Positions 3,374-32,419 are shown, counted from the stretch's first letter. The stretch: 64,000 nucleotides of DNA from Klebsormidium nitens (GCA_000708835.1 DF236976.1:186001-250000), one strand, 5' to 3'. Translations and numbers: made by a program. Notes: generated by a model not told the origin, from the letters alone.

Positions 3374-3949
3374 TGCATTCCGTGAGGCACCCAACTCAGA
3401 TTCAAAACATGTGGCTTAAATGCTTCAAAGGTCCCTCCGGCTCGTCCTGTTGAAATCATCAAAGGTTGAACCGCCAACCACAACAGACTTCACCTCAGAA
3501 GAGGTCCTCAACACGGAAGATGTTCATGACATTCTGCCATAGCCTCGATGAAAATCCGAGCCTGAAAGTTGGAAATTGGAAGGTCAACAATGGGCGACTC
3601 AAGACTTGCACCCTGTCAGTGTGATAAAATCTGGTCCCAGAGTCATACCGTCATACGTCCATACATGTTGACCCCCAAACTGATTTGATCCATTATTCAG
3701 CTAATAATGTAGGCTTTCGATGTATTCCGGGGGCGCTGTTCCGCTCGCGATGTTCGATCTTGCCTTTTCAGTGCCATGCTTTCCGTTCCGCTCCAATCCA
3801 GCGCTCACCCGGATCTCCGCAAAGCCTCGCAGAACCGACCGGAAGATACTCAGTTGCAGCCCCGCAGGGAAGTCCATTGGTATTTTATATGACTGTTCAG
3901 GTTTCCGGGTTATAGGACCCTAGGCAATTATAAGCGCAGAGGAATTTGG

Positions 3950-6900
3950 ATGACGGAATTACGACTCAACTTCTTTGTCCACCTTTGCTTCACGCTTTAC
4001 CAGCATTCACTACATTGCAGACGAAGTGCGCTGCAGATCAGGCGTTTTGTCAAAAGAAGAAGCTGTTTTAGAAGAAGTGGACACTCAGGTACATACTCTT
4101 TGGCGGCTTCTGTTTTGCTAGTGAACAAGACAGCTTACCCCGTTCTCTTCTTCACCTAAGGTGGAGCTCAAATTGACAAAGTTGTCAAAGTGGTGGTGCT
4201 CACTGCTACAGCCTCAGGTAATCATCAGATTGCAGATTATCAAGCAGCTCCAGGCATCAGCAATTGTGTCGTAGTTGAAAAGGAAGCACCAGGCTCCGTG
4301 GATCAGCCATTGGACACAATGGAGAGGGCAGTTCAGGCGGTCGAAGATTCCGACTCCCTGTCGGGGAAATACTGTTACTTTCCTAGAGATCTGGGACTGA
4401 ATACTTACGGTGGAGATGTATCGTGTCTGCAACAGTTTCTAAGTCATGAGGTAGGTGAATTGCATTGTTTTGCTGACTTAAAGGGGGCGTCTACCCTACG
4501 TCATAACCGGTCACCTTTTAGCAGGGGCACTGCTCGGGGGAAACACCGCTGATACCAAGTTCTTGGCGACAACCTACCATAAATTCTCACTTTGATGTCG
4601 CTTATGTGACGTCAGGGGGGACCGGTCCCCCAACGCCCTCTTTAAAGCACAAATCTATCAAGTTGGTGGAAGTTTCAAACTAAGGCACTCTGATTTACCA
4701 CAACCGTGCCGTTTTGTGATGCATTTCTTGAAGGCGTCTGGCAATCTGGTTATAGCTAAGGTCAATTTCTGTGATGATCGGGTTGATGGAACAATCGTAC
4801 GATGCAAGGAATGCACACTCACTGCCGATGTATAAGCAGTACCTTTATGGGCCACAATTGTATGAGGGGGGCCAACCTGATCGATTTGGGCGCAATTGCA
4901 CCAGGGGAAGTGCTGATTGAGACTACCATTTTCTTGTTGGCTGCAGGGATACTTTTCGGAAGAACCGACAGGCTTTTATGGCACCCAAACAAAAGATGCA
5001 GTTGCAAAGTGGCAGGTAAGCGTCTGCCTCATTAGTACCTTCAGAAGTCTTGCTTGACCTCAGATAGGAGGCGACGAGCGAGACGCTGGCGCCACGCTGG
5101 GGGACCCTTGAGCCCCGCACAAATTTGTGATGTGGAAAACCTTTGCAAAGGGGCACAATGCCAATTCTTCATCCATACTTCTCCTGCAACAAGAATCTTG
5201 TACGTTATGTTATGAAAGACTCTGGGGCAGAACCAATGTTGGGGCCATATGGGGCCTACTTTGCGGCTTCACTCATGCTCTGTAGTTTGCTTTCATGACA
5301 AGACCCTCAAGGGAATTGCAGGTTATGAAATCTCTCGAGAGTGGTTACTAGGTGTATTCAGTCATTGCCTTGGCTGGGTTGGAAATGGCTACCTGATGAA
5401 AAGATTGTTATCTTTGAAAGTGCCGAAATGAGCAGGCACCTCGTCGTATTGCTTCAATATGTCGGCGTTTTGTGTCTCCTTATCTTTGGTATTGGCTGCA
5501 CATGAGATGAAGGGTATATACTTCTCTCTTGTGTTTCAAGAGCTGGTTTTCTTGGAAAGAATTTTAGAACTGGGAGAGAATGAAAGTGGCTCCACTCTCT
5601 GCTCTGTTGCAGAAAGCTTCCGGTATAGAGCCAGCTGAAGGTTACATGGGGTACCCGACCCGGCTAGCATACGCCAAGCGATGTAAACTGCCAACTGCGG
5701 AGCAAATGCGTGCGGTCGAGGCCTCTTTGGATAACGATGTAAGCATTGTTTTCTGTCAAAGCGACAGCCGACGGACTGTTACAAACAAGAAAATCGGCCC
5801 AACAGCATGCGTTCAAGTCCCAATGGATGGCAAGCGAGTCTGTTCTCTTGGCCTAAGTTTGCACTGATGCTTCCTCGAAAAACTTCTTGCTGAAACGGAG
5901 TAGATTCAGCTTCTTCTACTGTTGGTCAGTCTGGCTCCCTTGCTGCCTTCCTTGAATCTCCTACATTTGAGCTCACAATCTCCATCGATACGGTTTTCAT
6001 CAGCTCAAAAGGATGTGGGCAACCTCCCAACGTTGGTCGTTGCTGTCTTGCAGAATGTGAGTGAGAAGTTGTGTATAGACGTGTACTCGGCCCCTGACGA
6101 GTCAGGAACGGAACTCTGCGAAACCCGCTGTGTGAGGTGAGCACTGACGCCACCTCTCTTTGCCTGCAGTTCTCACAACGGCCTTGCATAGAAGTCTGTT
6201 CACGAGCGGACACAGAAGGTGTCGAAAGCTGCGAAAAACGTTTCGTCAGGTATGCAGTCATTCGGAAACGCTTTTAGGCGGTCAGAGTAGAGTCGCCGTT
6301 GAAGGACGACAGATCACATTAGAAAGATTGAATTTGAGTGCTTTGTATTTACTCATACCTGATTGCCACGCGTCCGTGGTTTCTAAGATTTCTATCCAAC
6401 TGGAGTGGCTCGCGTTTGAAGCTACGCATATATTCTTCTTCTGTCCCCTGGGCTTCAATCGAGCAGTGTTGGACATTCTTCAGCGGAAAAAAACCGCTGG
6501 AAAAATGAAAAAGGAGCAAATTTCTAGCAGTTCGTAGCAGCAAAGAAACCTGAAACCTACACTTGCCGCCCAACCTTTGTTACTCTGTTGCAGGACGAAC
6601 GAACAAAAGGTGCACGCCTGCAGAGAAGCTTGTCAAGTCGCATACAGTAAAGCATGCAACAAGGTGAGAGACACAAAACAAGCTAGGACGGCTTTATTCC
6701 GGTGCTTCAGTCCTTCACTTTCGAGGGCCACGTTGCTTCTCAACTCACTTAGACTGGTTGAAGGTAGATTGATTGTCGTAGTGCCATATCTATTGTCTCT
6801 GCGGCTTGCTTTCTGGTCGATGGACCGTCTGCCCTTGGTATGATATCCAGCTTTTTGTAGGCAGTTGTGATCGTTCAATTTCAACAGTCCATGCCTCCTC

Positions 6901-8390: not shown

Positions 8391-11300
8391 CTACCCGTAC
8401 AAACGCTCGAATATCCCCAACCATCCAGTCTTGCTTTGAGACTCTTTCGATGTGGAGGGCTGATCCGCCAGTTTTGCTACGGAATTGCTTTCGGACACCA
8501 GTTCCTCGTCCAACGGCATCGTTCGGCCTTGCTTGGCCAACTGCGAGCGGGCACTTAAAAGGTTAGTACTCGGCTCAAGAAATGGTTCAATTGGAAGTTT
8601 TCAAATAACGAAGGTTTTCTTTGACAAGCTCGTAGCGACAAATACAGTGTCCAATCCTTCGAACGTCAGTATTCGAAGACTTGCAGTGCGCATCTCGCTC
8701 GGCTTGACTTACACGAGAGCACAGACAAAAATGAAGGCGGGAGCAACTAAAAGCAAGGAGCTCCCGACGCCTCAAGGCCCTCTGATTCTGTCGGCTGACC
8801 TCTACCTCACTGCTTGTTGTCGCACTCTGTGCTATCGTTGTAACTCCTTGATGCGTTGCAGAATTTTATATGACCCTCGAAGTTTGGATTTGCATCGGTC
8901 CTAACCGGGGCATTGTAACGTTAAAAAGAGGACGCGCATAGCTCACTGCAGGGCGTACAAGCTTCTCGCTTTGAAAAGGTGTCGGATCTGGAAGCCTTGG
9001 AAATCAAACAAGCAGGCATGAACGCGGGAAACCGTCCTTAAATACAGAGAGCATATATAGCAGAGTGGCCCGGAAAGCTGTCCTTGTGACAAAGCGAGAT
9101 CAAAAACAAAATGGCGAGACTCAAGCCGCGAAGTAGTCGAGCACACAAGGCCAGAGGGCCTATGCAAGCAAAGAGATGCACCCATTTGACGAAGATATAA
9201 GTAGAGCGTAGAATCTGGAAGCTGAAAAGCTCACGCTGATGTGTTCCTGCAGCACTTCGTACGCTTGCGCCACGTGTTCCACCAGCAGCCGCTCGGGGAA
9301 CGCGTCCTCCAGGCTCACGTCCGGAACTGTGACCGCCCCGTCCGGCCACGTCATAAAGTCGGCGTCCGCAAGGTACAGGCTCGCTTGGACGTCCGGCCCG
9401 CAGCGCTCGGACGTCAGGAAGCGCACCGCGAAGCGCTTGAGCGCGTGCGCGAAGACGTCGGCCGAGAGCGGGCCCCCGTGCAGGTCCGTCGACGCCAGCA
9501 GCTCCCGGCGGACGTCCGGTGGGAGCGGCGCGCGGTACGCGGCCGCGTCGAGGCCGTCCGAAGACGCCAGGATGACGTCCGCGACGCACTCCTCTAGGGT
9601 CTCGTAGAGGGCCGCCACGTGGCGGAGCTGGAAGCCCCCGAGGAAGGGCTCTTCGAAGTGTCGAATGGCGTAGTCGGGGAGCCACTGCTGCGCGTATTCG
9701 ACGAGGCTTTGGTTCGGATCGCCGCCGGTCTTCTTGAGCATTGAGAGGGCCACGCCGAAGGCCCCGAGAAGGGCCGCGGTGTCGCGCCGCGCGGCCGCGA
9801 GCGCACGGAACGCTCGCGCGCGTTCCGGTGAGAAGGTCTCCTGGGGGATCTTCTGGGCGACGTCGGACAGCAAAGTGGCTGACACGTGGCGGAAGAGCTC
9901 GAGGCGGTAGGGGAACTCACGGATGTTGTCCTGGAGACGGTTTGAGGACCCTCGATCAGGTCAAGGCTTGTGGGTTAGCGTTACGAGCGTTTAACCTTGA
10001 CCTGAATTCTTTCTGCATCAATGCAGTGCGCAGCTCATTCAAAAACAGCGAAAAACGCTAAGTTTTAAGTCGAGACTGACTGTGAGATACTCGGTGTCAT
10101 TTAACGACGAGTTTCCACGAATCAAGACGAAACAGCTTCCTAGCAGTCTACAGGATGCCTGGTTTCAAAACACTGGCTGAGGCCCTCAAGTGATTTGGTA
10201 TTAAGCCAGATTAACATGCCAGCATTTCGATTGATTTGCATTCAACCAGGTCCATTGATCCGGCAAAGTACCATCAAAACGGCATTAGGCGATTGGTGGT
10301 AAGCATTGGATGCATAGGCGATCATGCATCCGATACGGTGCCTCCGAAAGTCCACCTTTTCAAGCACAGTCCACAAAAAGGTAAGGATTTGGAAGAACCT
10401 GTCGCCACACACCGACGGATCTTCATAACACCAGCACAGGAGCCAGCCGGAAGGACCGCAAGAACTCGGCGCTCGTTCGCTGCTTTTTCGCTTGAAAGCC
10501 CCGTTGAATCCAACTCTTCCGAAGCTTCGTCGAAGAGGCCAGCCGAGAGCTGCCCAGCAGAGCTCACCGTTTGGAGGAGCGCCTTTCCGGCGACCAGCGC
10601 TCCCGCGAGCTCTGCCTCGATACCGCCGAAGTCGTACAGCACTTCCTGGCCCCGCCCGAAGTCGGGATGGCAGCAGCTGTGCCGCTCGTACAGCGACTCG
10701 TCTCGCACGTAATTGATCACTTGGTGGGGCTGCGAAAGAATCAAAACCTGATGGTATGAGCGAGTGAATTGGATTCTCGATGATCTCCGCTTTTGCAAAC
10801 GGAAGCTGCCGTGTTTGGCAATCCCACTGGTCAGAAGGTTTTCTGAGTAAGCATAGCTTTTTGGCAGCCGGAAGACTGAGTAGATCCGTCACGCTATGTG
10901 ATCGGCCTCTGCTCCAAGCAATTCTTTAAGGGATTACCATCTGCGGCGACCGGTTCAGCACGCCCACACCATGAAAGACTTTTTTAAGAGGATCCTTGTC
11001 GTTCTATGAGCCACTTCTGAAGGCAATCCTGAAGAGATTCATGCGCCCAAGCAATCTCATCCGTGGCTCCTATCGAATGCGCTTTTTGCACGTTCATCTC
11101 CAAACGGGCTCTCTAAGACGACTCTTAGGAGTCCATCGACCGCTCTCAGGAAAGGGATACTCAACGATTCAAAACAGCAACATCTCCGTTTTCTTCGATG
11201 ACTTCAAGGCCCTACTTACCTGCACGTCTTGCAGCGCCACCTCCGGCAGCTTGCCCGCGCGCTCCGCCCCTGTTCCATACTGCAGGTCCCGAAGCGCCGC

Positions 11301-14300
11301 GCACCCCCGCGCGGCCGCGTCAGCCGCGGCGCCCAGGAGCGCGTTCTGCCTCTGCGCGAGCGCGTGTATCATCGCGCACAGGAACACGCCGGGCTCGCGC
11401 GTTTCGACGCAGCTGAAGGCCAGGGGCTGGGAGGGGTCCATGGGCGGAGGCGGGGGCAGATCTTTACACTGCCAGCGCAGCGGTTCGGACCGGAGGGCGT
11501 CCCAGGCAGCGGTGAAGCGCTGAAATTGGGACCGGAGGAGAGGCCTGAGGAAGACAGAAAAGGTTAGTCAGCAATGAAAGGGGAGCGAAATTGACGGCAG
11601 AGCCGACAAGAATCTTGAACCTCGGCAAACGAGGCATCATCCAAGGCGCTCGACTACTGATAGCGCTGGTTCAACAATTATTTGCCGCGGTTGTTGCAAA
11701 GAACGATGCATGAGAGGACTTATTAAGAACGTGATGATATCGGGACTTGGTGGATGTGGGCTCAAGATGCTTGGAGGAAGGTGAGTAGCGAGAAAGAATA
11801 TGCACCCCACATGGGATGGAAGCATTGTAATAGAATCAGCATAACCGATTCAGCATATTACCAGGTTGACAGGAGACGAGTCGACTAGCACCTTAAAAAA
11901 CATTCCTCCTGCATCGGCATTGATCGAAAGTTCGTAACGGGAACAGCCTTCATGGAGGCGACTTTTCAGACTGCTTTCAGGGCGTTCGGGTCAGAAACTA
12001 GGGGTTGCTTCCGTGCGCAAAAACCCTGGCAAATCTCTGGCAAGAAGACTTTCAAGAAACCATTCAAATAGACTGAGACCGTGTGGTACGCCTCACCTTT
12101 GTCCGAGACGCTCCAAGGCCTGCTCCACGGACGTCCGCTCCGCCTCCCGGCGGTCCACCTGGTTCCCAAACCGGGTTAACACCTGGTTACTCCACTCGAC
12201 CAGCGGAAACAGCTCCTTAACCAGCTCCAACTGGTCTTCCTGCTCCAGGAACGCCCGCAGAAAGGGGTACCGGTCGTTGTTCTTCGCGTCCAAGAGGAAC
12301 GTGGCTTGGAAGTGAGAGAATGATGGGCGGCCACGTGTCCGCAGCAGCCGCGGCCGCCACTCCGCGCGGTACTCATTCGTCATCGCGAATTCCGTCTCCT
12401 CAATCTCCATCTTGAGAGCCCTGGAGCGGATTCCGGCGGAGCTCTCTTCCGTTCCCTTGTCACGAGTCAGTGCCGCCAAGACGGACTGCGGACGCGTGTC
12501 TTGCGTCACAGGACGTACGAACTCGTCCGCAAACGCCGTCTCCCAAACCTCGACGCTCCCAGGCACGGTGAGCTGGCCGGGAAGTTCGGAGAGTCCGCTG
12601 TCCGCCGTTCCGCTGATAGCCTCCCCCAGGGAGCTGAGGACGGAATGCACGACCGCCGACGCCTGCTGCACGTCACACGCCAGCTGCTGCCGCAGGAGGC
12701 GCCAGTCGTTGCACACGTGGCGCTGCACCAGATCACGTGCCTTGCCGTCATCCTCCGCTGAGCGGTTTCCGAGAACTAGACCGGAGAGCTCCCCCGGGGA
12801 ATGAAAACCGAGCTCAGAGCCGACTAGAAGGGCGGAGTGGGTGAGGAAGTGGAGCATGCGGAAAGCGACCGGGGAAAGGTTCCGGACGGTGTGCGAGAGA
12901 GAAGACACGCTCTCGGGCGTCTCTTGCAGATAACCTGCACAGAAAGGCACGTCGATAAGGCGTGCGTCGGGAAAAGGATGCTTGTTTAGCGCCAAAGTCA
13001 AAACCCTGAAAGCATTGGGCTGGACAACAAACGTACGAGAAGATAGTGATGCAAATCGTCAAAAAGTGAGGAAAGTAAACAAGCTGAGTTGGGAGAGAAA
13101 GTAGTGAGCTACTTGTGAATCTATGAACTTACGAACTTGCTTGATTTCCTTGCTTGCTTGCTTACTGACACTTCTTGCTTCTGCCCCAAAAGCTATGTAC
13201 GCATACACCTGTCTTTCCAAGACAATTCCGATTGCCGCCATGGGTTTCACATGAAGGAAAGGTTTCTCTGATAGCATCCGGAAGCCGCCAGATTACGCTG
13301 AATATGAAAGTGATTGAACGAAGCAACGAAAGTACTCTGCGCAGTTGAAGAATGCGCTCGCAGGAGCTTGGGAACGCTTGCGTGACCCAGTAACTAAATG
13401 GTCGCAATCCCTCACTGCTCAGAATAGGCACACCACGTCTGCACTTTAAAAGAGCTGACGAGTATCATCCAATCACTAAGAGCCCTCATAAGCTGGAAAG
13501 AAACAGACCCTACCAAGGAACGACATAAGAAAGTTGGGTCTTACCCGGGCGCTCCGTTCTTTCGCCCCCCGCAGCCATCGTCGGCTGTCCGTCCAGCCTC
13601 TGCAGCCCCCCGCCCGGGTTGAACGCTTCATGGTACCCTCTACCAATCTGGTTACGGCAGTCGGGGCACTGGGCTATGTCATTGATGGCCCCGCAGTTCC
13701 CCACAAAGAACAGCGCCCCGCACGCGCACCGGTAGCTCGTCAGCGCCTCGCGCCGTCGCAAGAGGTTCCCGGCGACCGCCTCCATGTCGGCCGCGCCCGC
13801 AACGAAGAAGTGCGCCGCGGCCGCGGCTGGGCGTTTCGCGTACTGGTCGAAGGGGGTTTGGACGCGCGGGTTCGGCGCCAGGACCAGCGCGAGGTGCGCG
13901 CACGCGGCCGCGAGGTGCTGTCCGGAGGCGTCGCCGTCGGGACGCATGAACAGGACGCTGTCTCTGCCGGTGGAGAAGGCGTTGTCCGCGAGGGCGACCA
14001 GCCCGCGCGCGACGCTGCCCGGCAGGTCGCCCCTTCGGACCGCGGACTTGAGAGCGGCGGCCGCGCGCTCACGCGGCCGCCCGAGGTCGCCTGCGGCTCT
14101 TTGGACGTAGAGAGAAGACGCGACGCCGTAGAGAAGTCCAAGCTGGATGGAGGGGTCTGCGGCGCTCTCTTTCACCAGCGCGTTGACGTCCTCTGCGTTG
14201 TTGCGCGCTGCGGCGAGCTCGAGACTGGCGCTCACTCTATCGAACACCGCGGAAACGTCTTCGCTGCGCGGCTGAAACGGGTCGAAACCGAGGGCCTTCT

Positions 14301-17300
14301 CCGCGCCAGCTGCGCTCCTCCAGGAGAGCGAACGCAGGGTTTCTTGAAAAGAGTCGCTCGGTACTTTGTCCCCCAGCCGTTCGATGATCTCGCCGACGGA
14401 CTGGAGCGAAAAGCGCTGCCGGAGCGTCTTCAGGATAAACACCAGGAGGGCGTCGGTGCCGGGCGCGCCCGCGGGAAGCTCCCGCCCCAGCGCAGTCACA
14501 ACCCGCTCCTCTAGTTGCTCGACATCGACGGTCCAGGCGTCCCGATCTCTGGTGTGAGCGGCCGCCGCCGCGAACGCGCCCAAAAGCGCGCGCAGAAAGG
14601 CGGCCGCGCACAGGTGGCGCAGGATGCCGTGAGCATCGGCTCCGGCGCGGAACAGCCTTCCCGCTGACGTCAGCAAGGGGATGAGCCTTCCAACCTTCCA
14701 CCCGTCGGCTTCTGAAGTTGCCACGTCACCCCCAACCTCCTTTGCCACGAGCACGGCTTCGGGACCCAGCGAGCCGAACAGCGCTCCTTGCATGACGTCA
14801 CAGACGAGCGCTTCGAGAGGGCCGTCCACGTCATCTGTCCACGTCCTCTGCTCTCTGAGTGCGTCTTCCAAAACTTTCAGGCAGAGCGGAACAGCGGATC
14901 CCCCGTCGTCTAGCAGAAGCGTCCCGGGCAGGTCCACCTTTTCCCCGGCCACCGTCAGCAGGCGCTCCAGCACGGGCTTCAGGAACCGGTTGAAACGACC
15001 GGCCTTACAGATGAACCGCGCAACGAGTGGACTCGTTCGTTTGTCCGAGAGGCTCGCGCCGAGCACTAGCGCCCAGAAACGATCCACGGAGTCTTCGAAG
15101 CGCGTCCCGGCCGTGACACTTTCCCGCAGACGGGTGAGCACGTGCTGAATCTGGTCCAGGCCCTCCGCTTGCGTCAGCAGGTCCGCGCCCCTCGTGCGCG
15201 CGATTTGGAGCAGCTCGCGCAGTGCCGCGCGCGTCTCTTCGCCTTCGAACGGAAGCGCGACGACCGAGATGAAGTCGCGCATCAGCGTCAGGAGCGCGCG
15301 CCACCCCTCGAGCGCGCGGCCGCGCGCCGCGCCCATGGCCGCGATCCGCCGCAAGACCCTGCTGGCGGCCGCCAGCCAAGCCTCCAAACCCCCAAGCCGC
15401 GCGAGCACGCGCTCGTCCGGCAGAAGCGCCTCGCTGAACGCCCCCAGCAAGAACGCGTCGAGTGATTCCAGCGGCTGTTCCCGGCGACGGGTTCCGTCCC
15501 ACTTTCCGAGAAGCTCTTGGAAGCTGAGCGCCCGGTTGCACGCCCCGAGCAGATTCAATCGCTCGGCGATGGCGGTCTCGAGCTCCCAGCAGGCGGCGTG
15601 CAGGGCTACCGGGTGCCCGGGGATCTCTGCCGACTGCTCCAGCAGCCAGAGGAAGGCCTGGCGAGCCTGCTCGGGGGAAAGGCCATCGACCGGGGGAGCT
15701 TGCAGGCACACGAAGTCAAGCACGTACTGGGGGAAGTAATCTTCGACCACCCGGGCCAGCGTCCCGGGCACCGAATTGGCGACCGCGACCAGGAGTTTGC
15801 CCGGATCGGTCGCCCTCGGACCAGAAACCGGACCGTCCGCATCCTGCGTCCGCTCCGACTCGTACAGCGTCCGCAGCTCCTCGACGGCCTTGCAGTAGAG
15901 CCCGCTGAAGGGCAGCGCCAACGGCAGGCGCGGCGGGAGCGCGTAGCACTCGAGGCCGCGCGGCTCGGGCAGGGTTTCGAGGTTTAGCGCGCGCTCGTCC
16001 AGGATCAGATCCAGCCACGCGGCCTTCACCTCCGGCGGCGCGTGGAAGTAGCCGGCGAGGGCCCCGTTCCGCTCGAGGGCGCACAGAAGCATGGCCAAGG
16101 GGCGGTGCACGCTGTCCTCCACCCGCTTCAACAGGGCCTCCCGCAGCGACGGCGACGTCAGCAGCGCGCGCTGGCTGCACGCCACGTGGCGCTGCCAGCC
16201 AATGGCGTCGCCGTTCGCGCGCAGCCAGTCGACCGCGCGCGCGCCGAGCGCGCGCAGGAGGTCCGCGTCGCCGGACACGGACGCCACCATGGTGCGGACG
16301 TGCGCTGCGGACGCGTTGGTGTTGTCGTACTTGATGCACAAGAAGGCCTCGTACAGCTTGCGGCGCGCGACGGAGGCGAAGGGGCAGCCCGGGGATTGGA
16401 GCAAGTCGACCAGGCTGCCTCGGCACAGGGCCCTGCACAAAGGATTGAGGAACGAATATGTCCACAATGCCTAAAATCTGTATTGCGCAAAGGACTCTGA
16501 TTGAGTGGATGCCGGATGATGCCGTGGGTCTTCACATTCTGGGATGTGATTTGGCAAGCCCCACCGCCTGATTCAGGGGTTCAAAACAAGCGAAAAGTCC
16601 AGCTTTTGTAATGTCGTAATCAACGCTTTTCTTAGAAGGATTTAGCGTGGAGTTGATCCAGTCTTGATCGTGCAGGAGAGTACTGGACGAGCATACTTTG
16701 ACCGGCGCTGACCTGGAACTGCATCAATTGAGCGTCATACAGCAGCTTTGGTGGACCGATCACACGGACACAAGAAGTGACTTTTTATGACAGAACTCAT
16801 TCAGAATTACCACTATCCTCCCAAACATTCCCTCACTAAAGATGATGTCCTCAAGTTGTCAGCAAGCCTTTGCAATCTCACCTGACAGAATTCTCCGACG
16901 GCTCCAAACAGTCCACGGCCGCCTGCCGCCAGCCGCACAGGAAGCTAAACCCCCGGAACCCTTGCGCGCCCGTCTTGGCGGCCCTCTCCATGTGGATCAC
17001 CAGCACCACGTGCTTCTGCGCGGCCGCGGCGGGCGCGGTCGCGGAGCGCGCGGCCGCGTGCTCGTCGACGAGGAACTTTGCCAGCTGGATGTGCGCGCGG
17101 TCGGCACGTGCCTCGCCCTGGAGGACGAGCAGCGCCGCGTCGGACGTCCAGAAGTGGTCCACGCGTGCGGCCAGGTGGCGCTCCGCGGTGAACGCGCTCA
17201 GCTGCTCGACCTGCGGGTGGGGTTTGAGGATTTAAAGATCTGAGGTTCTGAGGGTGGTGTTGTTTGACGGGTTTGATTGGTTGAGGATCTGAGATTCATA

Positions 17301-20300
17301 AGGCGAGTCTGGAAAACGGATTGTACAAATCCCGAAGATGGAAACAGGTGGGGATTCGATGTTTCGATCCCTCCGTATTTTCAACGTTCAGATTTCCGCG
17401 CGTTTCAGTAGATACAAGTTAGGATTTCGCCAAGACTTTCCTATAAGGGATTGTCTCTAAGAGAGCAAACCTGAAAAATTAGAAACCTCAGAAAAAGCTT
17501 TTTGCATCCTTCGGGACTGTGAGCTGATGCGACCTGCTCACCTGTACGTCAAAGCGGCTCTCTAGGATTGCGCGCACGTCTGTGTGAACGCTCGAGTATG
17601 TCATCACGATGGCCCGCAAGCCGGACTGCCCTTCCGGCGGAACGTCCTGCACGGAAGAGAGAACGGAAGGTGTCATTGATCAGCATACAAGGCCCTCAGA
17701 AACAGGCTTCGCTTCCACAGATTCTCAAAAAAAGGAGGTAGCGTGCGATAAGGTATAGGCGGGTTTGATGACCACTCAAGAGTCCCCTGCTTTTCAGAGC
17801 AGCCGCCAGATGCAACCTTGCCAACAGAGCTTTTTTGGCCTTTTAAGCGGAGCCTACAGAAGGGGCCGGTCAAAGCTCTTTTCTCCGCGTAACATCATCA
17901 GAACACCGTTTTCACTGCGTTGCATAGGCAGAAAAGCTTCGGCAAAGTAGAGATAAATTAGCAAACAGAAGCTGACACGAAATCTGACAGCCTCTTCTCA
18001 TTCTCTTCTGATTTTACCCAAAGGCAAAAGGCCTCACCGCCAGCTCCGCGGTTAGATACGCCGGCAGATCGCCGTGGCTCTGCTCGTCGAAGTAGGTAGA
18101 GAACCAGCGCTGCGCCTCAGCGGGGTCCATCTTGGAGAGCGCCGAGTCCAGGCTGCGCAGCATGCCGTCCGCTGTGGCGATGCGGACCAGGTCGCGCTTG
18201 CACCTTGACAGAAGCAATTATGACTTTCGGTGTTGAAGAATGACGTGTAAGATTAGTTGAGCCGTTGATAAAGGTTTCTGAGACGGATGGGCCTTCCTTT
18301 GACCAGGATTTACATTTGTGGGCTGGATATGCTATAGCACGACGAACAGTTTCGCTTACAGGTCAGGCCGACTCAAGCGGGAGACATCTTCGGGATTTTG
18401 GGACAAACTGAGAGATTGAATGGGCAGCTTGAGAGGTCGAGGATTGTAGAAGTCAAGTGTCCGAAACTGACCGCTTTTGCCACCAACTTGATTAACACGG
18501 CGGGCATGCGTTCTGTCAGCTCGCTACTGCTGCACGCATCGCTGCACGTCCACAAGGCAACTGGGCAGAAGCAAGGGGGCGAGAGGGTAGCAAAGGGGAT
18601 GGCCCAACGACCATACTCCCTTGGAAACATTCAATTCATCTCCGAGGGCACCTTTCCGCTTTTGTTGGAGTCCGTTTGGGACACAGAAGACCCCATTCTC
18701 TTGGCAATACAAATTCGCGAGGAGTCGCCTTTGCTCACCTTTCCAAGACGGTCTCGACACCTTCCGTCCCTCTCTCCGCACTATGGTGCAGCACCAGGGA
18801 TGGTAAGGTATCCCCGTGCAGCCCGCAGAAGACGTCATTCTCATCGAACGGCGCGAGCTCCCCCCCGGGCGCGTACGCGGTGGCCATTCCCACCGCCCAG
18901 TTGTGCAGCTCCGCCACAGCCGCGGTGAGCGCCGGTGTTAATACCCTCTGGTACGTGAGGTGGTGCTTTTCGAAGCGGTTCAGGAACGGCGGGTCGCACT
19001 GCGCGAGCGCGCGCTCGTCGACGAGGACGATGCACCGGAAGCGCGGGGACACGTGGCACATGGGCGAGCTGAAGGCGCCGAGCGCGACGCGGCAGTTGCG
19101 CTTGGTGCCGACGATGGAGTAATTCTGGTTCAGCATGTCGTATAGGCTGCCGTACACCGGCTCCATGCCCTTGAGGATCAGCGTGCTGTGGGAGGAAATA
19201 GGATTGGATCAGAGCGCTGTGGAAGGAAGTGGAGGCTGAGGACCGTATTGCCGGTCGAGTCGCAATACCCCAGAAAGTCTCCATGGATCGACGTCTTCTG
19301 TAGACATACATGAAGGGCGCAGCCTACGAAAGACCCATTCGGCATCAAATTCAACATAGTCCACGCAGAAGAGGAAGGCAATGATGCATTTCCAGCTTGA
19401 AGCAAGGGGCCAAGATTCTCAGGCAACTGAGAAGTGTGAGACAATGACTTTCTTCAAACCCCTCAGACGTTGTAAAGCGTTCCAACCTCGCAGAGAGCCT
19501 GGAAAGCAAAACAATTGCCTATCAAACCATAGCCGACGTTTATAACTCTGAGCCTACAGACCTGGACTTAGTCCCACCCGAACAGCCCGGTTGGCATCCC
19601 CGGGCACCCACCTGCCAATCTCCATGCAAGAGATGATCTTGCTGAGCACCCGGTAGCTGTACTCCTCGCTCTGGTCCTCAGCATACGCGCTCCCAAACAG
19701 CTTCACCGCGCCGGCCACCCCAACAAACTGCTCCAAAATCCCGAGACCCGCGTCGCCGTTCGTGATGATCATCAGATGCCGCGCTTGCTCGTCCCTCAGG
19801 TTCTCGCCCACCAGCTCCAGAACGCCCGGGGGATCCCCCACCGGGCCCCCGAGGCCCTGTTCCCGCAGGAAGATCTGCTCCACCGACTCCTCCCCCGGGT
19901 CCAGGTTCCCGCCGAAGTTGCGCCCCAGCGCGGCGACGATGTCGGCCGGGGTCAACGGGCCCTGTACGCGGCCGCGCAGGCACTTTATGAGCGAGTAAAA
20001 GTCGCGCAGGCCGTGGAAATGGGGCCTCGGCTGGCGGGCCTCGTACCCATGGTACGCGCGCGCGAGCGCGCGCAGCTGCGCGTCGAACGGCGCGCTGAGG
20101 GCCTCCCCGGAAGTCTCCAAATAGGCCTCCAGGATTGACCGGGCGGTTTCGTAGAGGTCGGTGACTGTGGGCTCGGGGCGCGAGAGGTGGATCGCCCGGT
20201 TCATCTTGGCCGGGTCGAGCTCCCAGTTGCTGATGCCAACTACGGCCACGTCGAGGAGGGCACCGGGGGCTGCCCCCGGGGGGTCCAATATGCTGTGCAA

Positions 20301-23300
20301 GACCTGAGGGGAAGGGTGCACAGGGTTGAAGGCTTTGAAAGAAAGGCGTTCTGAAAAGCGGCGGGCTCGAGACTTTAAGTCTTCGGCTGAATATGTCGTT
20401 GATTAGTTGGTGCTCTATGGAGTGTCCCTTGGTTCCGTAGGAATGACACGGCAAAAGGGCGGTTCAATGAGGTTCTAGGAGATGTATGAGTGGGACTTGA
20501 TATTTGTTTAAAAAAAATTCGAGTGGTCTTTGTTCTTCCACAAAATGCAAAGCTGGGACCAAGAAAGAGAGGATACTTTGGAAAGTCACGAATCCTCACC
20601 ACCTCAGAGTCTGAAGAACCTCAAAAATAAATGCTCAATAGTTCACATAAGTTTCAAGGATGCATGGTCACATGCTGGCAGTCTCACGGGAAGGCTAAAA
20701 GAACGCAGTAGGTTAACGTAACGGGCGGCGTTCCTTGCTTCACTGCTTTCTTTCTTTAAGCTGTCAAATGGGAGGCCCTCGCTACTAACGGCACGAGTTC
20801 ATCGCAAAAAGAGGCGATCCCTTATGTGGCTGCAACTCGAGATTGGATTCGGTAAAGGAATCCCATACCTTGAGCGGGTTGTGGCGCGATACCTCCGCGA
20901 GGCCCACTTCGTCTAGCAGCACCACCGGCAGCACGTCCTCGCTCTTGTTGCGCGCCTTGTATGCGCGCGCCTTCTCGAACACCTGCAGAAGCCGGAATTT
21001 TCCGCACGCACTCGTCTTCTCAATTCGAAGCGCATCTCCATTTCATAGCAACAAGTTTTTCCTGTATGGAGGGGCTTCTTGAGGCTAGCGTGGCCTGATT
21101 AGCAATGGAACAACGTTGCAGTTTTTGTTTGTCAGGCGCGGAAAAGTCGTTGATGATGAAATCAATCCGACTTCGGTTGAGTGTCCACTTGTTGCCTTCA
21201 GTTCAGACTTGCTCAAACACTTGCTCACTCGAGAATCTCGATGCAATGAATGTCATTAAAAGCAATGGACCAGATAGGCCTTTTCAACCTGCAGATTCAG
21301 GTCACGGAGACGGCCTTGAAGAGTCCTCTCCCGCTTCAACATCGAACGTTCTCTGTCTGGATTGAGCAAAACTTTAAGCAAAGTCCAAGAGGCGACTTTG
21401 GTAGTCTGATTTCCGGCGAAGTCCTGCTATTAACGTCACATATCATTAGGCGACTTACCTTTCTGATCCCCTCAGAGGTCGAGGACTCTGAGCCTTGGTA
21501 CGACATGACGTAGACCTGAGGGAGCTTCTGGAAGAAGGGGTCGCTGGAGTCCGGGCCTCGCAAATTGCTGCAGTGAAAGATGCAACCATCTTAAAGGCTG
21601 GTAAGGAGTTCGCAACAACGTAGCACCTTTATGTCTTTGTTAGCGACGATGTTCAGCGGACCGACCCGCTCTATATCTTCTACCAATCCAGTGACCTCAT
21701 GATCACGATACAATGTATCCCAAACGACAAAAAGAGTTGACATTCAAAGAACCATTCTTAATCTTAGGCTGCATTTTAACTATTGACCCGCTGTGGGCTG
21801 CTGAAGTCAAACATGATCATGACAGCCCAACTGCCACCAAGAGCAGGTTCCGACCACAAATTATACCCAAGAATGCACAAACAGGTCTTCGTGCCAGCGA
21901 GGGGGATTTCACGAGAAACAGGTGACAACGAAAAATCAGACTGCTTGAGTGGATCAAAGCTTTCTGCAACCTGCCGACCCTTTCTTCATACACAAGTCAA
22001 AGTAACTCATTATCTGCGTCCGCCCCAAAGCGCATAAGTTTGGATCCATTCAATTGTTTGTAGTGCCCACTTCGAAGATGGAACGCCCAAGAAGCAGAGA
22101 CGACACTGAGGAATCCAGTACCCGGCTTGATACAATTCCAGAAGATCGTGCTTCTCTCCACAGATTCAACCGCCCAGTTCGCCCACCTGTTGATGAGCTG
22201 CATGCAGAGCGACTTGCTGCACCCCGGCTTCCCAATCATGAACACCGGGATGCGCGTCAGCACGCACACCAGCGTCACGAACACGTTCTCGCGCAGCGCC
22301 GCGTTTTTCGCCGTCCCGGGGGGCAGCGCCATCCTATCCAAGTAGTCCATCTGCTCCCCCCGTAAAATGTCCTCGAACTCCCCCTCTCCCAGAGTGACTC
22401 CGTGCCGGGCGAATGTCCCCCTCACGAGCTCCCGGAAGCGCCGCCGCTGCTCGTCTGATGGGAGGCGGCAGTAGTAGCAGTGCGCGAGCGCCAAAACCAC
22501 GGACCGGAGCTCGATCTGGGCGCCCGGTTCGTTGCCCCGGTCGGCATTCAGCACTTTCCGGACGACGGACCCGACTGCCCCGAGCACGGACTCCGCTTTC
22601 CGGACGCGCCGCCGCTTCTTCTCGCTAGGTGGGCGGTCCGTCAGGCTTTGCGAGAACCACCGCTGAAGCGTCAGCCAGCGGCTGACGTCACGGAGGCTGA
22701 CGCAGCTGTCCTTTTCCTCCGTCCGGACGTACGCCTGGGACGTCGCCAGCAGGTCCACCAAGAGTTCGGACCGTCCGAGCGGGACGGACCGTTCGAACCG
22801 TCCGGAGACCATCTTCGAAATGTACAGCCGCTCATCCGCCGGGTTAAGCGAACCGTAGTCCCACGTCCAGTCCAGCATCGCCTCAGGCAGCTCGTTAACC
22901 CGGTACACTAACCGCGACTGGTCGTCCTTAACCCGCTGGTTAGCCAACCCCGCCGGCGCTTGGCTGGGCTCACCCCTCAACCGGTACGGGTTACAGGTCG
23001 CCAACAGGGTTAGGTTAACCGGGAGGGATATGCCGTCCAGGGAGCGGTGACAGACCAAATCGTTCAGGAGCCCCAGGTGCTGACACGTGTTCACTTCGTC
23101 GAGCAGGCCCCAAACCTCGCCGCCAGCGGCCGCGGCCTCGCAGCAGTCGCCCACGAACTCGAGGATGTCCTCTTCCGTCGTTCCGGCGTGGATGTTCAGG
23201 CAGCGGAACGGAACTTCCACGACCCGGGCGAGGTACGAGATCAGGCTCGTTTTCCCGCACCCCGTCTCGCCCATGATGACCACCGGCACGCGCGCGCGGA

Positions 23301-26300
23301 TTCTGAGGGAGATCAGCGTCATCTTGAGAAGGTTGTCCGCGGTTAGCGCGTACGGGGGCAGGTTCAGCTCGCCGTGCCTAGTTCTCACCACTCTCTCCAG
23401 CCGCTCGTGGAGCTCGTCGATCGGCAGCGTTCGGTAGTCGGGGAGACGGGCCTGGCCGAACGTCTGGCTGTTGAACAGGCGTTGGATCTCGAGCGGAACT
23501 TGGGTTACGTCTCGGTAAAGCGCGGTTACGGTGTTCGGGTCTTGGGAGTGGAAAATGACCAACAGATGGTTGCTCTGCCGCCATTGAATCATGTCCTGGA
23601 CACGTGTCGCCAGCCGCTCCGCCGTGCCCCCAGATGCCGCGCTCGCGGCCGCTGTGCCGGAGGGGCGCACCGCGCGCAGCGCAAAGTCCCGTGCCACGGC
23701 GACCAGTGATTGGACGAGGAGCGAGCGGACGTTTCTGGGGGCGCCCATGTCCGCAAGGACGCCGGACTTGAAGAAGACGCTGTCCGACAGGTGTCCGAGC
23801 TGGGCGGCTAGAACGTTCAGGAACGTGTTGAGGAGGGAGAACGACGGCGCGGCCACGTGCGCCAGAAAGTGGCGCTGCAGGAGGTCCTGACACGTGTCGG
23901 CCGGAAGAGGCGCCGCGTCCCGGCAGGCGCCCGAGAGGATGAGGTCGTCGCGGTCGACGCGCCCGCTCTCGAGCGCGTGCAGGTACACGCACACGGTCCG
24001 TACCGGGCTGCTGACGTCATCGCTGACGCGGAGGTTGGTCAAGTCCCAGGTCAGGTGCTCCCGGCGGAACCAGTGGCAGATGGGCAAGTCTTCGAACAGC
24101 CGGTTCCGCATGTCGTTCGCGAGCTCGACGAAAACGGAACGGAATCCGGCGCGGTAGACGCCGGCGGTCGTGCAGCTGAGGGAGCCCAGGATGAGCAGCT
24201 CGAAGAGGGCGTTGCTGACGTGGGCGGGGTCGTCGAGGGTGCTGACGTCAGCGTGGAGGCAGCCGGTTGCGCCGGGGCCCAGGGCTTGGAGCCGGGCGAT
24301 GATCTGGGTGCGCGAGGCGGCGCCGGTCACGGACAGGCAGTGGAGGGAAGCACCCTGCAAAAGTGATTGTGTGAGGTTCAGGCTCCAGATATGGGACTTT
24401 CGTCAGCATATAGTTTTCCGGTATGCGGAGGCTTTGTGCCGACGCATCGCCTTGCTGGCTTGCTAAGTCAGCAAGCCGCGCGATGCGTTGGTAGGAAGTC
24501 CTGTGAAAAGACGATAACGAGGACCCGTCTCGAGAGCTACTCCGCAATTATCGCGTCGCGAAAGGCCTTTTTGGGTGCCAAAAAGTAGACAAAAACCAGT
24601 TGTCATCCCATCATTTATCAGAGGATTCGATGTACTCTGCTTCTATATAGCTCGTTCTGTCCGTCAGATCCCTGTCTACCAAGTCAGATGCACAAATCTT
24701 CTGCACCCGACTTAACAACAATGTAATTATTGATTAGAGCACGTCTGCAACGAGTGCTCAAGTTCGTTTGTCAGACGAGTCTGATAGTCGGACGATTCTG
24801 ATAAGGATTCCCTTTTCACAAGAAGTGACCTTTTGCTTGCGGTTCTACCACGACCTCAGGACTGCCATTTCGAAGCAGGTCTCAAACTCTGTTTGCATTG
24901 GAAGAACATGATTGGGCTGACTTCAACCTGGAGATGCGATCAGCCTTCTCGACCCACGCAAATTTAGTTGAGCTGCCTAGGCCGGAAAAAAACAAAAAAA
25001 ACCCACTGAATGTTCGGTGCTCAGAATCACCGTTTCGTGATCTGCTCCCCGGAGGTTGAGCACTTGCCTCGCATAAGGCTGCTAAAGATTGTCGAGTCCG
25101 ACCGATTTGAGAAGAGACGCAGAATGTCTCACAGCTGATAGCCAACAAGCGGCTCAGCGAAAAGCCTAGTTTCGAATCCTTGCCCCAGACAACATGACTT
25201 CTTTCACAACCCACAAAAGACTCCTTCAGAAGCGAGATGTACTTCCTGCTTGGACAGGCTTTCCTCTCCCGTCAAAACTCAGAAAGTAAGTCGTTCCGAC
25301 AATTCAGCATGCCCCACCTTCTGAGCCGCCAGCTGTCGGATCGTCTCCGTCTTGCCGACCCCGGGCCTGTCTGACGTCACCACGACCACCTCCGGCAGGT
25401 CCGGCACCGCCCCCAGCAGCGGCTTCAGCTCCTCTGACGTCAGCTTCCCAACCATACTCCGCACCGGCACCCCAAAGCTCTGCCGTTTGCGGTCACCCGA
25501 GACGATGATTGCGAGCTTGAAACGGCTGACGTCGGTCGTTTTCGCCGCCTTCTGGAGCTCCTGAGCCAGCAGCGTGTGGCACGTGAAGTCGAGCTGGTCC
25601 GCGAAGGCGACGCAGAAGAGCGGATCGTCGGCGGAACCGGTCCAGCGGAACCGGAAGCAGCGGAGCAGCAGCAGGTGCGCCTCCTCCCAGGACGTCCGAG
25701 CGTCGCACAGCAGGACGTCCGACGGCTGCGGCAGCTGGCCCTGGTCCAAGTACAGCGACATGACAGCTGTCAACACTTGGCCTGGCTCATCGACGGCGCC
25801 CACGAAGACCTCCCCAGGCGAAACGGAATCCGCCGGAAAGGCGCTGCCTCCGCCAAGTCCAAACGGCCGTCGGGGGCGGTTCAGGCCCTGGAAGGCGCTC
25901 CTCAGAGCACCCCCAAGGAGGCGAAGCCTATCCCCGGGCTCAGTGGGCAGCTTTTGTAGGGTTCGCTTAAGCGCTCGGTCTTCGGCGCTCGGGTGAATCC
26001 ACGTCAGCAGGTCACGTGCGTGGCGCTCCGCTTCCGCTTCCGCTGTCCCCGTGAGCAGGTCCCACAGTGGCCCCAGCTGGTGGGACGCGCAGAAGTTGAG
26101 CTCGTAAAACTCCTCGCGCGAGGCCGCGAGGGCGGCCTTCCATTCAGACAGCCGGCCGCGGAGCCCCTCGAGCGTCCGCACGAGGTCCAGGTCCGCGAAC
26201 CGGGCTGTGAGCGCCCAGGAGCGGAACTCGAAGTGGCCCGCGGCCGCGAGCGCGGCCGCCGTCGCGGCCAGCTGCTGCGCGGCGTCGGCCTGCGCGATGA

Positions 26301-29300: not shown

Positions 29301-32300
29301 GCATGTCTCTTTCGACAAAGGATCGATGGCAGACCTGGCACGAGACTGATAACACTTGTGGATTACTAAGAGCAGACAACTTTGTGAAGCTGCATTTCAG
29401 AGACCCAGCCGTTGTTTCAATATAAGCAAACGATTGATCCGCCCAGCCACGCCAACCGCGCAACTGCGCCCTCGTCATGCCAGATCCCCTCATCCATAAG
29501 AGCCACAGGGTATGCGATTACTCACCTTGAGGCCACTTGGACCGAACCATCCTCCCTCGCTGACGTCAGCAGCCGCACCGCGGCCGCCGCCTTGTCCAGG
29601 TCCTCCGCGAACGAGGCCACGGCGGTGCGGGCGACCCCATAGAAGGCGTCAGCAGTCTCCGGTCGCCCTTCGCCAGCGCACTTGAGGACGTCCGACGGTG
29701 CGAAGTCGGACGCCAGCTTGGCGGCGTGCTCGGACAGGCGCTCCACCACCGGGCCCCACTCTTCCGACTCCAGTTGCTTGACTTGCCGCTTCAGCTCTTC
29801 AGTTTTCTCAAAAGCGCTTAGGGGCGTCTGCGTCGCTCGGTCGATTGTCCCTGAAACGTATGCCAAGCACGCGGCTTCCACGGCAGCCGCCAGAACCCGC
29901 GCATCCCGCGTTCCGTTTCCGGCCGGCCCCGTTCCGTTGTTGTCACCGCTGTCTTTGTCCAGAGAAAGCACCCGGGAGAGCAAACCGGGCAGCAGATCCA
30001 GCGGCTCTCGAGCCCCAGACTGCGCGATACTCCGCAGAAGCGCCACGGCCGGTTTCTTCGCCGCGAACAGCTCTTTCGTGAAGACGAGCTTCGAGAGGGT
30101 TTGCAGGTTTTCCGGCGACCACTCGGCGGGCCCTTTCGCGCTACGGATCACGTGGCCCCGCAGCGCCTCGATCAGTCCCGGGTGCTGCGCGAGCGGTGCC
30201 AGCTTCTGGCACAGGTGTAAAAGCGCCCGGTCGATCCCAACGGCCCCCCGCGTCTGGAGCAGCGCCGCGAGACGCCGCGACACGTGTTTTGCGATCGGCT
30301 TTTCACACTCGCCTACCCGAGGCATCTGGAGAACTTCCAACAGAGCCGCCGCGCACGGTGCGGAAACAATCACCCGGCCGACGATCAGCGGGAAGTCGTC
30401 CCCCGAGCAGGACGCAAGAAACGGCAGCGCGGCTCGCACGTCGGCGCAGAACTGGTCTCCGTCCGTGGGCGCGCCTTCTCGGACGTCCGCAAGGAAGCGG
30501 AGCTCGGCGTCCGCAGCGGCCAGTCCCGGGAGGTGGCGCAGCCAATCGGATGCCGGGGCGGTCGCCCGCACGAGCAGGGCGGGGATTGGGCGCAGCGCCT
30601 CCCTGACCGCTGACGTCAGCGCCACGTCACCGCTGGCGTCAGCGAGGCCCTGCAGCGTCGCCATGACGCGGCCGCCCAGCGCCCGGTTGGACGCGGCCGA
30701 CGCAGAGGATACGGACCGCCACGGACGGCTTTGGAGGTCCAGGGCCCGTCCGAAGATGACGCACGCGGCAACGCAGAGGTAAACGCGTGCGCGCGCGTCT
30801 TGGGGCTCGGGGGCGGGGGCTTCCGGTTCGCAAGAGTCGTAGAGATCGACCAGTCCCTCTGCAATCGATGCGGCGACGCTCGCGCTGAACCAGGGCGCGT
30901 TGCAGATCTGCGCATGGAGCCCGCGCAGCTCGTCGAGAACCTCCGGCAAACCCTGGCCGTCGAGCAGTTCGCCAAGCAGCATGCCCGCGTACGTCAGTGC
31001 CGCGTCCGCGTTGGTGGGCAGCTGGGCCGCCACGTGTCGCTCCAGGAGCAGCCCCTCGGCGAAGCAGAACTGGTGCCGCCCCGGCTGCAGCCGATACCCG
31101 CCCCGCGAGACCCTCTCCTCCTCTGCCTTTGAGAAAACGTGCTGGAATCCGCCGCGCTTCCGGGCGACCACGAAGTTGAACCGGAGGCGTGACTGGTCGC
31201 CCGCCCCGCGCACCCGTACCCGGTCCGAAGACCAGAGCGTGCGTTCGTAGGGGGCTACGAATAACGGCACTCGGAGGGGCCGGCCATTCTCCTCGGTGAA
31301 GAGAGACCCGACTGCAAAGACTTCGAAGAAGAAACCTCCCTGGCCTTGGGCGACCTCCTCCGGCAGGACCACGTGAAAGGCGACCGTCCTCAGCTTCGCC
31401 ACCTCTTGGTTGGTCGCCTTCGCTCCCCCCCCCTCATTGCCCACGTCAGCTTTCAAGCGCTTCGAGGAGTGATCAGGCCCTTCCGACGCTTCTCCTCCTT
31501 CCGTCCGCTCCTCTTGCGAGACAAGACGCCGCGTCGCTCCCTTGCCTCTGAGTCCTTCCGAGATCAACGACGCCACGTGCGCAGACTCCACCACGTGGGC
31601 AGGTTGGCTAAGCCGGGGGCTTTCTTCCTTGTCGGCGGATTCTGCGACGCGAGCCACGTGTTCCGTAGTTTCTGCCACGTGGGCGCTTCCGATTGGGGTC
31701 TGGCCCACGTGGGCGGTGACCCAGTCGAGCCCACTTGCGAGGACGCCCGCATATGAGAATGGGCGACTGCTCTGGACGGGCTCTTTGGACTCGGGGGACG
31801 CCGCGGGAGGGGTTCGAGCTCCGGGTGCCAACGGTTCCACGTCAGCATCGGACTCTGGTCCTTCCACTGTCACACTCTTGCCTGGTGAGTCGCGAGCAGC
31901 GGGTTGGGTGCCAGACAGAAGGGAGGAGCTCCAAAGTCCCCCGAAAAGGGAAGATCCAGAGCCCAGCTCGAAGGGGTTTACGGATCTCGCTCCAGATCCG
32001 GTCTCTCCCCGTTCGTCTAGCAAAAGCTTCTTCTTCCGTTCGTCTGCCCAGTTCTGGCTCCCGAAGTAGGCGCCCTCTTCCCAGGCCCGTTTTCCCCGCC
32101 ACATGCTCGCATCAAAGGGGAGGGGCCCGCCAGCAATAGACGATGGGAAGCCCCAGTTGCTCGGGGAGGAAGGGCTCGAGAATTGGGGGGTAGAGAAAGC
32201 GTCCGGGGACTGGGGGTTGGAGAAAGAATTGTGGGCCTGGAGGGGCAGACATGGCTGGGGGCGCAAGTCAAAAGACTCGGAAGAAGATGGAGACTCCAAG

Positions 32301-32419
32301 TTGAACGCGGCGCTTCCGGTTTCCTGGGTTTCGTGGCTTGATGGGGCTGTGGGTTTCCTTGAGTGGTTGAAGCTCTGCTTATCTACATGGTCTCCAGCCT
32401 GGCCCTCGTCGCCACCCAT
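8391..32419 (-). CDS. RNF213: RNF213/mysterin-like giant AAA+ ATPase - E3 ubiquitin ligase (~4,900 aa, ~17 exons)
   Basis: Phase-consistent GT-AG exons: 32419-29526, 28566-28261, 27640-25318, 24354-22187, 21567-21459, 20982-20869, 20303-19612, 19185-18739, 18203-18038, 17646-17542, 17210-16882, 16432-13545, 12934-12097, 11544-11220, 10729-10568, 9930-9235 and probably 8540-8391. RNF213 signature motifs: VIMGETGCGKT...LLDEVNT...CNPYR, LVYRVNELP, SLRDV, IGKPGCSKSL, SYQGSESSTSEGI, VLLDEVGLAE...NPLKVLH, VGISNWELDPAKMNRA, GLRDFYSLIK, RNFGG, LYDMLNQNY, PFLNRFEKH, plus an RZ finger. The last exon is uncertain (alternative 8846-8832). Confidence 0.93.
13630..13740 (-). other. RZ (RNF213-ZNFX1) zinc finger within the RNF213-like gene
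   Basis: Translation YRCACGALFFVGNCGAINDIAQCPDCRNQIGRGYH fits the RZ consensus YxCxxGHxxxxGxCGxPxxxxxCxxCxxxIGGxxH. Confidence 0.9.
27334..27396 (-). repeat. In-frame tandem duplication (36-nt period) in the RNF213-like exon
   Basis: Two 27-nt units, 24/27 identical, encoding KTFPNFLKP-AES-KTFPNFLNP. Confidence 0.9.

Follow-up and report, generated by a model that had tools for sequence, protein, structure and literature searches.

RNF213 (mysterin) is the main Moyamoya disease gene and encodes an immune ubiquitin ligase (E3) that ubiquitylates bacterial lipopolysaccharide. It has been described as conserved in all vertebrates (Ahel et al., 2020; doi 10.7554/eLife.56185), and its RING domain is dispensable in vitro (doi 10.1101/2021.05.10.443411). 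The roles of the residues of the mammalian RZ finger have been reported (doi 10.1101/2021.05.10.443411, 10.1101/2025.10.14.682297, 10.1101/2025.09.05.674436): the zinc ligands of mouse RNF213 are C4451, H4455, C4471 and C4474, a Cys-His-Cys-Cys (CHCC) set that is fully conserved in the alignment of the 2021 preprint (doi 10.1101/2021.05.10.443411). In mammals, the C-terminal domain is the E2-docking domain. The RZ finger of ZNFX1 has been traced back to choanoflagellates (2025 preprint; doi 10.1101/2025.10.14.682297). Here we analyze a gene contained in 64,000 nucleotides of DNA from Klebsormidium nitens (GCA_000708835.1 DF236976.1:186001-250000), hereafter the window, with positions counted from its first letter. 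The gene occupies positions 9121-32419 of the minus strand, to which all its coordinates refer. Probably, it is an expressed, full-length RNF213 homologue of ~4,880 amino acids without a RING, which has a predicted four-cysteine (CCCC) RZ finger and would act by the mechanism of the mammalian enzyme.

From the AAA core with its two Walker A/B pairs through the hinge, the helical E3 module and the RZ finger to a probable C-terminal domain, the order of the parts is the same as in vertebrate RNF213 (human Q63HN8; 6TAX, 8S24, 9JWG). Unlike the vertebrate protein, however, the target has no RING, human RNF213 being 69-100 residues longer there; its second zinc ligand is probably a Cys that precedes the conserved Gly, whereas in human RNF213 a His that follows the Gly has this role; and no CBM20 was detected in its N-terminal exon. 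The target belongs with the RZ-type giants of Glomeromycota, Endogone, Ceratopteris, Naegleria, Cyanophora, Epipyxis and Cymbomonas, which have the same architecture and finger and no RING, although three of ten such giants possess the CBM20 that was not detected in the target, and the Cyanophora protein (P0019) reads H-S-C-G, with His in place of the first-ligand Cys. The ZNFX1 finger is of the same Pfam/PROSITE RZ type, with nucleophile Cys and general-base His; ZNFX1, however, is a superfamily 1 helicase with a CHCC finger, binds E2 through a Miz/RING-like domain and has neither C-terminal domain nor AAA core. RBR and RCR (MYCBP2) ligases likewise combine a zinc-binding domain with a free catalytic Cys and a nearby His, but their folds are unrelated and they recruit E2 via a RING, which the target lacks.

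A reading of the DNA made from the sequence alone (the sequence-only reading) had placed in the interval 13545-16432 an E3 module with an RZ finger and no visible RING. This interval coincides exactly with a single uninterrupted exon of 962 full codons, which encodes the hinge, the E3 module and the RZ finger and lies in an open frame of 985 codons (13510-16467) with the RZ near its 3′ end. The stretch is represented in 20 public runs, which belong to eight studies; four of these runs, each from a different study, supplied the contigs that were aligned to positions 11900-17800. Contigs of 9-15.5 kb (the longest of 15,478 nucleotides) span 13543-16431 with no gaps or mismatches and skip the introns 12935-13544, 16433-16881 and 17211-17541, each of which is GT..AG on the minus strand. 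Since the contigs are spliced, the RNF213-like gene is transcribed; since they are continuous across the exon and both its neighbours, no hidden exon lies within 13545-16432. The contigs also confirm the junction to the next exon (12097-12934), which reads ...ERTERP-G-YLQETPE and leads into the end of the RZ domain and the predicted start of the C-terminal domain. The gene as a whole is described by an approximate 18-exon splice model that opens with an ATG in the first open reading frame (29522-32419, 965 amino acids). Its coding sequence of ~14.6 kb fits the contigs of 15.5 kb, and the junctions known from the transcripts are all recovered by the model apart from a single acceptor, which is 12 nucleotides off (12922 in the model, 12934 in the transcripts). 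An origin from Klebsormidium nitens accords with the GT..AG introns, the GC-rich exons and the homologues in the green lineage.

Several lines of search for a RING gave a negative result. The Pfam scan matched zf-RZ and no RING family in any large exon of the gene; residues 298-844 of the E3-module exon contain just four scattered cysteines and no RING-like cluster; no Cys/His cluster with paired CxxC occurs in any minus-strand frame of 7000-36000; and translation of the whole window in all six frames shows no RING-like pattern. In human RNF213, the family profile covers residues 3600-3896 and 4142-4599 (chain numbering + 366) and leaves the RING-bearing part unaligned, and at the RING region human RNF213 is ~100 residues longer than the profile. 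In the structural alignment (VIA-align), residues 165-879 of the model span human 3701-4484, a stretch for which the human protein has 69 more residues. The human RING occupies residues 3997-4036 of the UniProt entry, a position consistent with doi 10.7554/eLife.56185. Pfam, cysteine scans, contigs and the profile and structure alignments therefore agree with the claim of the sequence-only reading that the AAA core is not followed by a RING ahead of the RZ. That claim would have been overturned by a RING in an overlooked exon, which for this stretch is ruled out by the contigs running through the exon and its two neighbours and by the cysteine-cluster scans in all frames. The target gene either never had the C3HC4 RING that gave the family its name and is located within the E3 module of vertebrate RNF213, or lost it cleanly.

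The RZ finger, ALTSYRCACGALFFVGNCGAINDIAQCPDCRNQIGRGYHEA, is encoded at 13624-13746, and the C-terminal part of the 985-codon frame reads YRCACGALFFVGNCGAINDIAQCPDCRNQIGRGYH. The match to Pfam ZnF_RZ-type (PF20173) has an E-value of 4.9e-10 and reaches 39.3 bits, where the curated cut-off is 27; this score, together with the family alignment, rules out a chance resemblance. Correspondence to the human RZ was established by pairwise HMMER alignment, using exon residue numbers and checking the codons, and conservation was read from two alignments, A1 with 10 full-length homologues and A2 with the target exon plus 16 homologous segments. In the C-A-C motif (C902, A903, C904; 13720-13728), C902 is the equivalent of the human zinc ligand C4505, and C904, two residues further on, aligns with an Asn of human RNF213; from their codons and their conservation in the family (C904 invariant and C902 nearly invariant in A1), the two cysteines probably serve as the first two zinc ligands. 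Ala906 (codon GCG, 13714-13716) stands in the place of His4509, a zinc ligand in human RNF213, and the finger accordingly departs from the mouse-type CHCC set. Cys913 in G-N-C-G (13693-13695), which aligns with human C4516, is the predicted ubiquitin-accepting nucleophile, while Cys922 and Cys925 in C-P-D-C (13657-13668), the equivalents of human C4525 and C4528, are the predicted third and fourth ligands; all three cysteines are invariant in A1 and A2. His934 (13630-13632), nine residues past the CxxC, at least 90% conserved in A2 and equivalent to human H4537, is the predicted general base. The target finger thus has the nucleophile Cys (G-x-C-G) and the general-base His of the RZ type, and would be expected to be catalytic.

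The second zinc ligand was scored in an alignment of 76 related RZ-like fingers. A Cys before the conserved Gly is the only candidate in 65 of them and a His after the Gly (the human type, C-P-N-G-H) in six; four fingers have both and one, a degenerate finger, has neither. Overall, the Cys is found in 69/76 and the His in 10/76, and at least one candidate is present in 75/76. The two residues are nearly mutually exclusive and jointly nearly universal, and it is because of this complementary pattern that we infer a CCCC site. The same pattern supports a zinc-ligand swap (CHCC to CCCC), in which the second ligand would shift from the His after the Gly to the Cys before it. The four fingers with both residues are plausible intermediates of such a swap. 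In P0039 (C-I-C-G-H) and P0077 (C-R-C-G-H), which carry both candidate ligands, the nucleophile is intact. By contrast, about 33 of the 76 fingers have no GxCG nucleophile yet keep C-x-C and C-P-x-C, the His being usually gone too; retention of the four cysteines in relatives without the nucleophile is as expected for a structural zinc site that leaves the GxCG Cys free. The degenerate fingers of P0011 (amphioxus), P0012, P0020, P0026, P0031, P0061 and others resemble structural pseudo-fingers, the giants that carry them being complete in other respects. As for the sequence-only reading, the RZ peptide that it quoted is recovered by translation, its GxCG cysteine, the Ala in place of the human His and the additional Cys, two residues beyond the initial one, are all where it put them, and the alternative set of zinc ligands that it proposed is supported by the 65/6/4/1 distribution.

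Homology to RNF213 extends along the protein. The AAA-core exon (22189-24354) matches human RNF213 over 564 residues (phmmer E-value 4.7e-50), with midasin far behind, and has Pfam AAA_5 and AAA_7 matches. It carries a first Walker pair, with GETGCGKT (23248-23271) as Walker A and LLDEVN (23089-23106) as Walker B, and the Walker A of a further pair, GKPGCSKS (22210-22233), whose Walker B partner, VVLLDEVG (20902-20919), is found in a small exon at 20869-20982 with modelled boundaries. Both pairs, GETGCGKT/LLDEVN and GKPGCSKS/LLDEVG, are intact, and the target protein contains a dynein/midasin-like AAA+ core with two-module Walker motifs. A further AAA exon (18738-19166) matches human RNF213 with an E-value of 1e-13. 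As for the E3 module, its profile (A2) matches human RNF213 with an E-value of 1.4e-37, and the AlphaFold2 model of the exon (predicted local distance difference test, pLDDT, 77.7) consists of helices throughout, followed by short strands in the terminal RZ. With this model as query, the top nine Foldseek matches are all RNF213 (E-value 2e-9, probability 1.00), and VIA-align superimposes 602 residues on the human E3 module with a Z-score of 11.1. The RNF213-specific helical E3 module, a fold without other counterpart in the PDB, is therefore present in the target. Beyond the RZ, the following exon (12099-12932) has a weak collinear match to mouse RNF213 4508-4742 (residue count of chain 7oik_A; E-value 5e-4) and the last large exon (9163-9885) a weak collinear match to human RNF213 (E-value 0.01); alongside these, the family profile extends to human 4599, i.e., into the region of the C-terminal domain. 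These matches support the view that the gene is a full-length RNF213 homologue, collinear from the AAA core through the E3 module to the C-terminal domain, and, taken with the absence of the RING, that it is a natural RING-less RNF213 with an RZ, as had been proposed. At the other end of the protein, Pfam detects no CBM20 in the 965-amino-acid first reading frame, whose first ~300 residues (31520-32419) are Ser/Pro-rich and of low complexity, with no detectable CBM20 or N-terminal zinc finger.

Relatives of the protein were collected by an exhaustive HMMER search with the target E3 exon against 1.84 billion representative proteins, which returned 105 homologues; a word-based search for named full-length relatives, with the P0002 RZ region as query, gave only three proteins and is too insensitive for a census. 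Many of the relatives are giants of 3,000-5,000 amino acids, and several bear the automatic name "RZ-type domain-containing protein". The closest is a metagenomic exon with 64% identity, the others being at most 38% identical except for a 61-residue fragment at 58%; E3-module identity to the fungal, fern, algal and protist RZ-type relatives is 17-26%. Named sources of the relatives include Glomeromycota (Acaulospora, Racocetra, Cetraspora, Gigaspora and Ambispora), Endogone, the fern Ceratopteris, the glaucophyte Cyanophora, the chrysophyte Epipyxis, two Naegleria species, amphioxus and one fish, and a homologue from the green alga Cymbomonas was added by a separate search. A RING is present in a single one of the 105, the fish RNF213, and every non-vertebrate homologue found is without it. 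According to Pfam, ten full-length giants contain RZ (10/10), AAA (9/10) and CBM20 (3/10) domains and no RING family (0/10), and their consensus finger (A1), YxCxCGFxYVIGNCGxPMxxxxCPxCxxxIGGxNH, is of the target's type. P0107 (4,646 amino acids) has CBM20, AAA and RZ without RING, which shows that the CBM20 of human RNF213 occurs also in RING-less relatives.

Outside vertebrates, most of the family thus has the C-x-C-G finger without RING, while among the proteins sampled here the human combination of CHCC finger and RING is the exception. It follows that the target is not a special case: the sequence-only reading was right in taking the gene as naturally RING-less, but what it singled out as a notable case is the rule outside vertebrates. 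As far as the literature could be searched, we found no paper on non-animal RNF213-like proteins, on natural RING-less homologues or on a Cys-type RZ finger; these features are visible in databases and, within the limits of that search, apparently undescribed.

Two opposite histories could have produced this distribution. RING-less AAA+ ligases with a four-Cys RZ (C-x-C-G ... G-x-C-G ... C-P-x-C ... H) may be ancestral and have existed in early eukaryotes, the vertebrate RING and CHCC finger being later; we put this forward tentatively, as a proposal that falls slightly short of an even chance. The reverse, that the RING-bearing form is ancestral and the RING was lost secondarily, once here or many times, so that the gene is silent on the original activity, appears unlikely. 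The wide spread of RING-less forms favours a single RING gain on the animal side: the RING is confined to the fish RNF213 among 105 homologues that span Glomeromycota, Endogone, a fern, a glaucophyte, a chrysophyte, Naegleria and amphioxus, the Cymbomonas protein is RING-less as well, Pfam detects no RING family in ten full-length giants, and many independent clean losses would be less parsimonious than a single gain. On the other hand, the homologue search was seeded by a RING-less exon and may under-sample RING-bearing invertebrate orthologues. Moreover, the maximum-likelihood tree of 46 E3 modules is an unrooted, star-like polytomy with long branches and biased composition, in which the fish RNF213 appears as a single long branch amid RING-less branches and the nearest relatives of the target do not emerge. 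Because this tree is a rootless star, the direction of change, RING gain or loss, is not readable from it, and it neither supports nor rejects either history. The idea of the sequence-only reading that RZ transthiolation is the ancestral activity is accordingly in keeping with the distribution of RING-less forms but unproven.

The missing His could also be explained in another way, namely that C913 of the GNCG loop is itself the fourth zinc ligand and the finger is structural only, without transthiolation. The ~33 of 76 relatives whose fingers have no GxCG nucleophile do show that the family can sustain an RZ-like finger with a purely structural role. Nevertheless, we regard this explanation as very unlikely in view of the following: C904, invariant in the ten giants of A1 and missing from His-type fingers only, provides a fourth cysteine; where the Cys at this position is missing (7/76 fingers), the His is present in six of the seven; the relatives that lost C913 retain C902, C904 and the CxxC, so that these four suffice; and the target keeps the general-base His934, whose equivalent has no structural role in the mouse enzyme (doi 10.1101/2021.05.10.443411). 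That a separate protein provides a RING in trans, or that one comes from an unsampled alternative transcript, is hardly to be expected. The transcripts are contigs of four runs and contigs drop rare isoforms, and ZNFX1 illustrates that an RZ can cooperate with a second E2-binding domain (doi 10.1101/2025.10.14.682297, 10.1101/2025.09.05.674436). However, no frame of the window contains a RING-like pattern, and the activity of mammalian RNF213 requires the C-terminal domain and the RZ but not the RING (doi 10.1101/2021.05.10.443411).

The reading that we prefer is therefore a RING-less, full-length RNF213 homologue that would work as the mammalian enzyme does. Its predicted layout comprises a disordered N-terminus with a helical arm, the AAA+ core, the hinge, the helical E3 module, the RZ finger and the C-terminal domain. 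By analogy with the mouse and human enzymes, ATP binding in the AAA core would switch the E3 on, E2~ubiquitin would dock at the C-terminal domain, and ubiquitin would move by transthiolation to the RZ finger, where Cys913 of the G-N-C-G loop would accept it and His934 would assist its onward transfer to a substrate lysine or hydroxyl. One zinc ion, probably bound by C902, C904, C922 and C925 instead of by the Cys-His-Cys-Cys set, would hold the RZ fold. An immune or quality-control role of the protein, also suggested by analogy, is only a guess.

Several observations weigh against this picture. The counts over the 76 fingers are phylogenetically non-independent. Identity of the E3 module to mammalian RNF213 is only 13-15% (Foldseek alignment), and for this reason regulatory details may differ. 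The target finger has I-G-R-G-Y-H in place of the I-G-G-x-N-H of the family consensus, and the RZ portion of the AlphaFold2 model has only moderate confidence (pLDDT ~59-76). Finally, the transcript-backed junctions of the gene model are those of the three introns between 12096 and 17647; the remainder is prediction, including a doubtful exon of 14 nucleotides. This micro-exon, at 19310-19323, may be an artefact of the splice model.

The value of these results lies in the family-wide pattern rather than in the single gene, which is one of about a hundred such proteins over several eukaryotic supergroups, and the published mechanism is not contradicted by them. A transcribed, natural RING-less homologue shows that the machine made of AAA core, E3 module, RZ and C-terminal domain stands alone, and the four-Cys finger offers a natural test of structural versus catalytic RZ residues. 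Furthermore, the survey corrects a bias, the mammalian finger being a minority form in this sample, and points to simpler organisms for the study of RZ-type ligases. If RING-less ligases with a four-Cys RZ were indeed ancestral, ATPase-gated RZ transthiolation would be an old, stand-alone class of E3 that can be studied in Klebsormidium, Naegleria and mycorrhizal fungi.

Some of the relatives have peculiarities of their own. In the metagenomic exon with 64% identity (L001:10001-13526, Joint Genome Institute metagenome 3300060285), an intron lies just before the RZ, after ...RRRETLTR, where the target has none; its finger ends CPDCRTTLLAGYGTH, with the His 11 residues after the CxxC instead of nine and the IGG motif gone. 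The Cymbomonas protein (P0108, 5,532 amino acids) additionally has NHL repeats. In P0080, the partial fish RNF213, the RING-containing segment occurs twice, at residues 599 and 1973, probably through a duplication in assembly or annotation. Elsewhere in the window, a plus-strand open reading frame of 200 amino acids (60468-61067) gives a weak, sub-threshold Pfam match to PigN, the glycosylphosphatidylinositol ethanolamine phosphate transferase (E-value 7e-4; 19 bits against a cut-off of 25.4).

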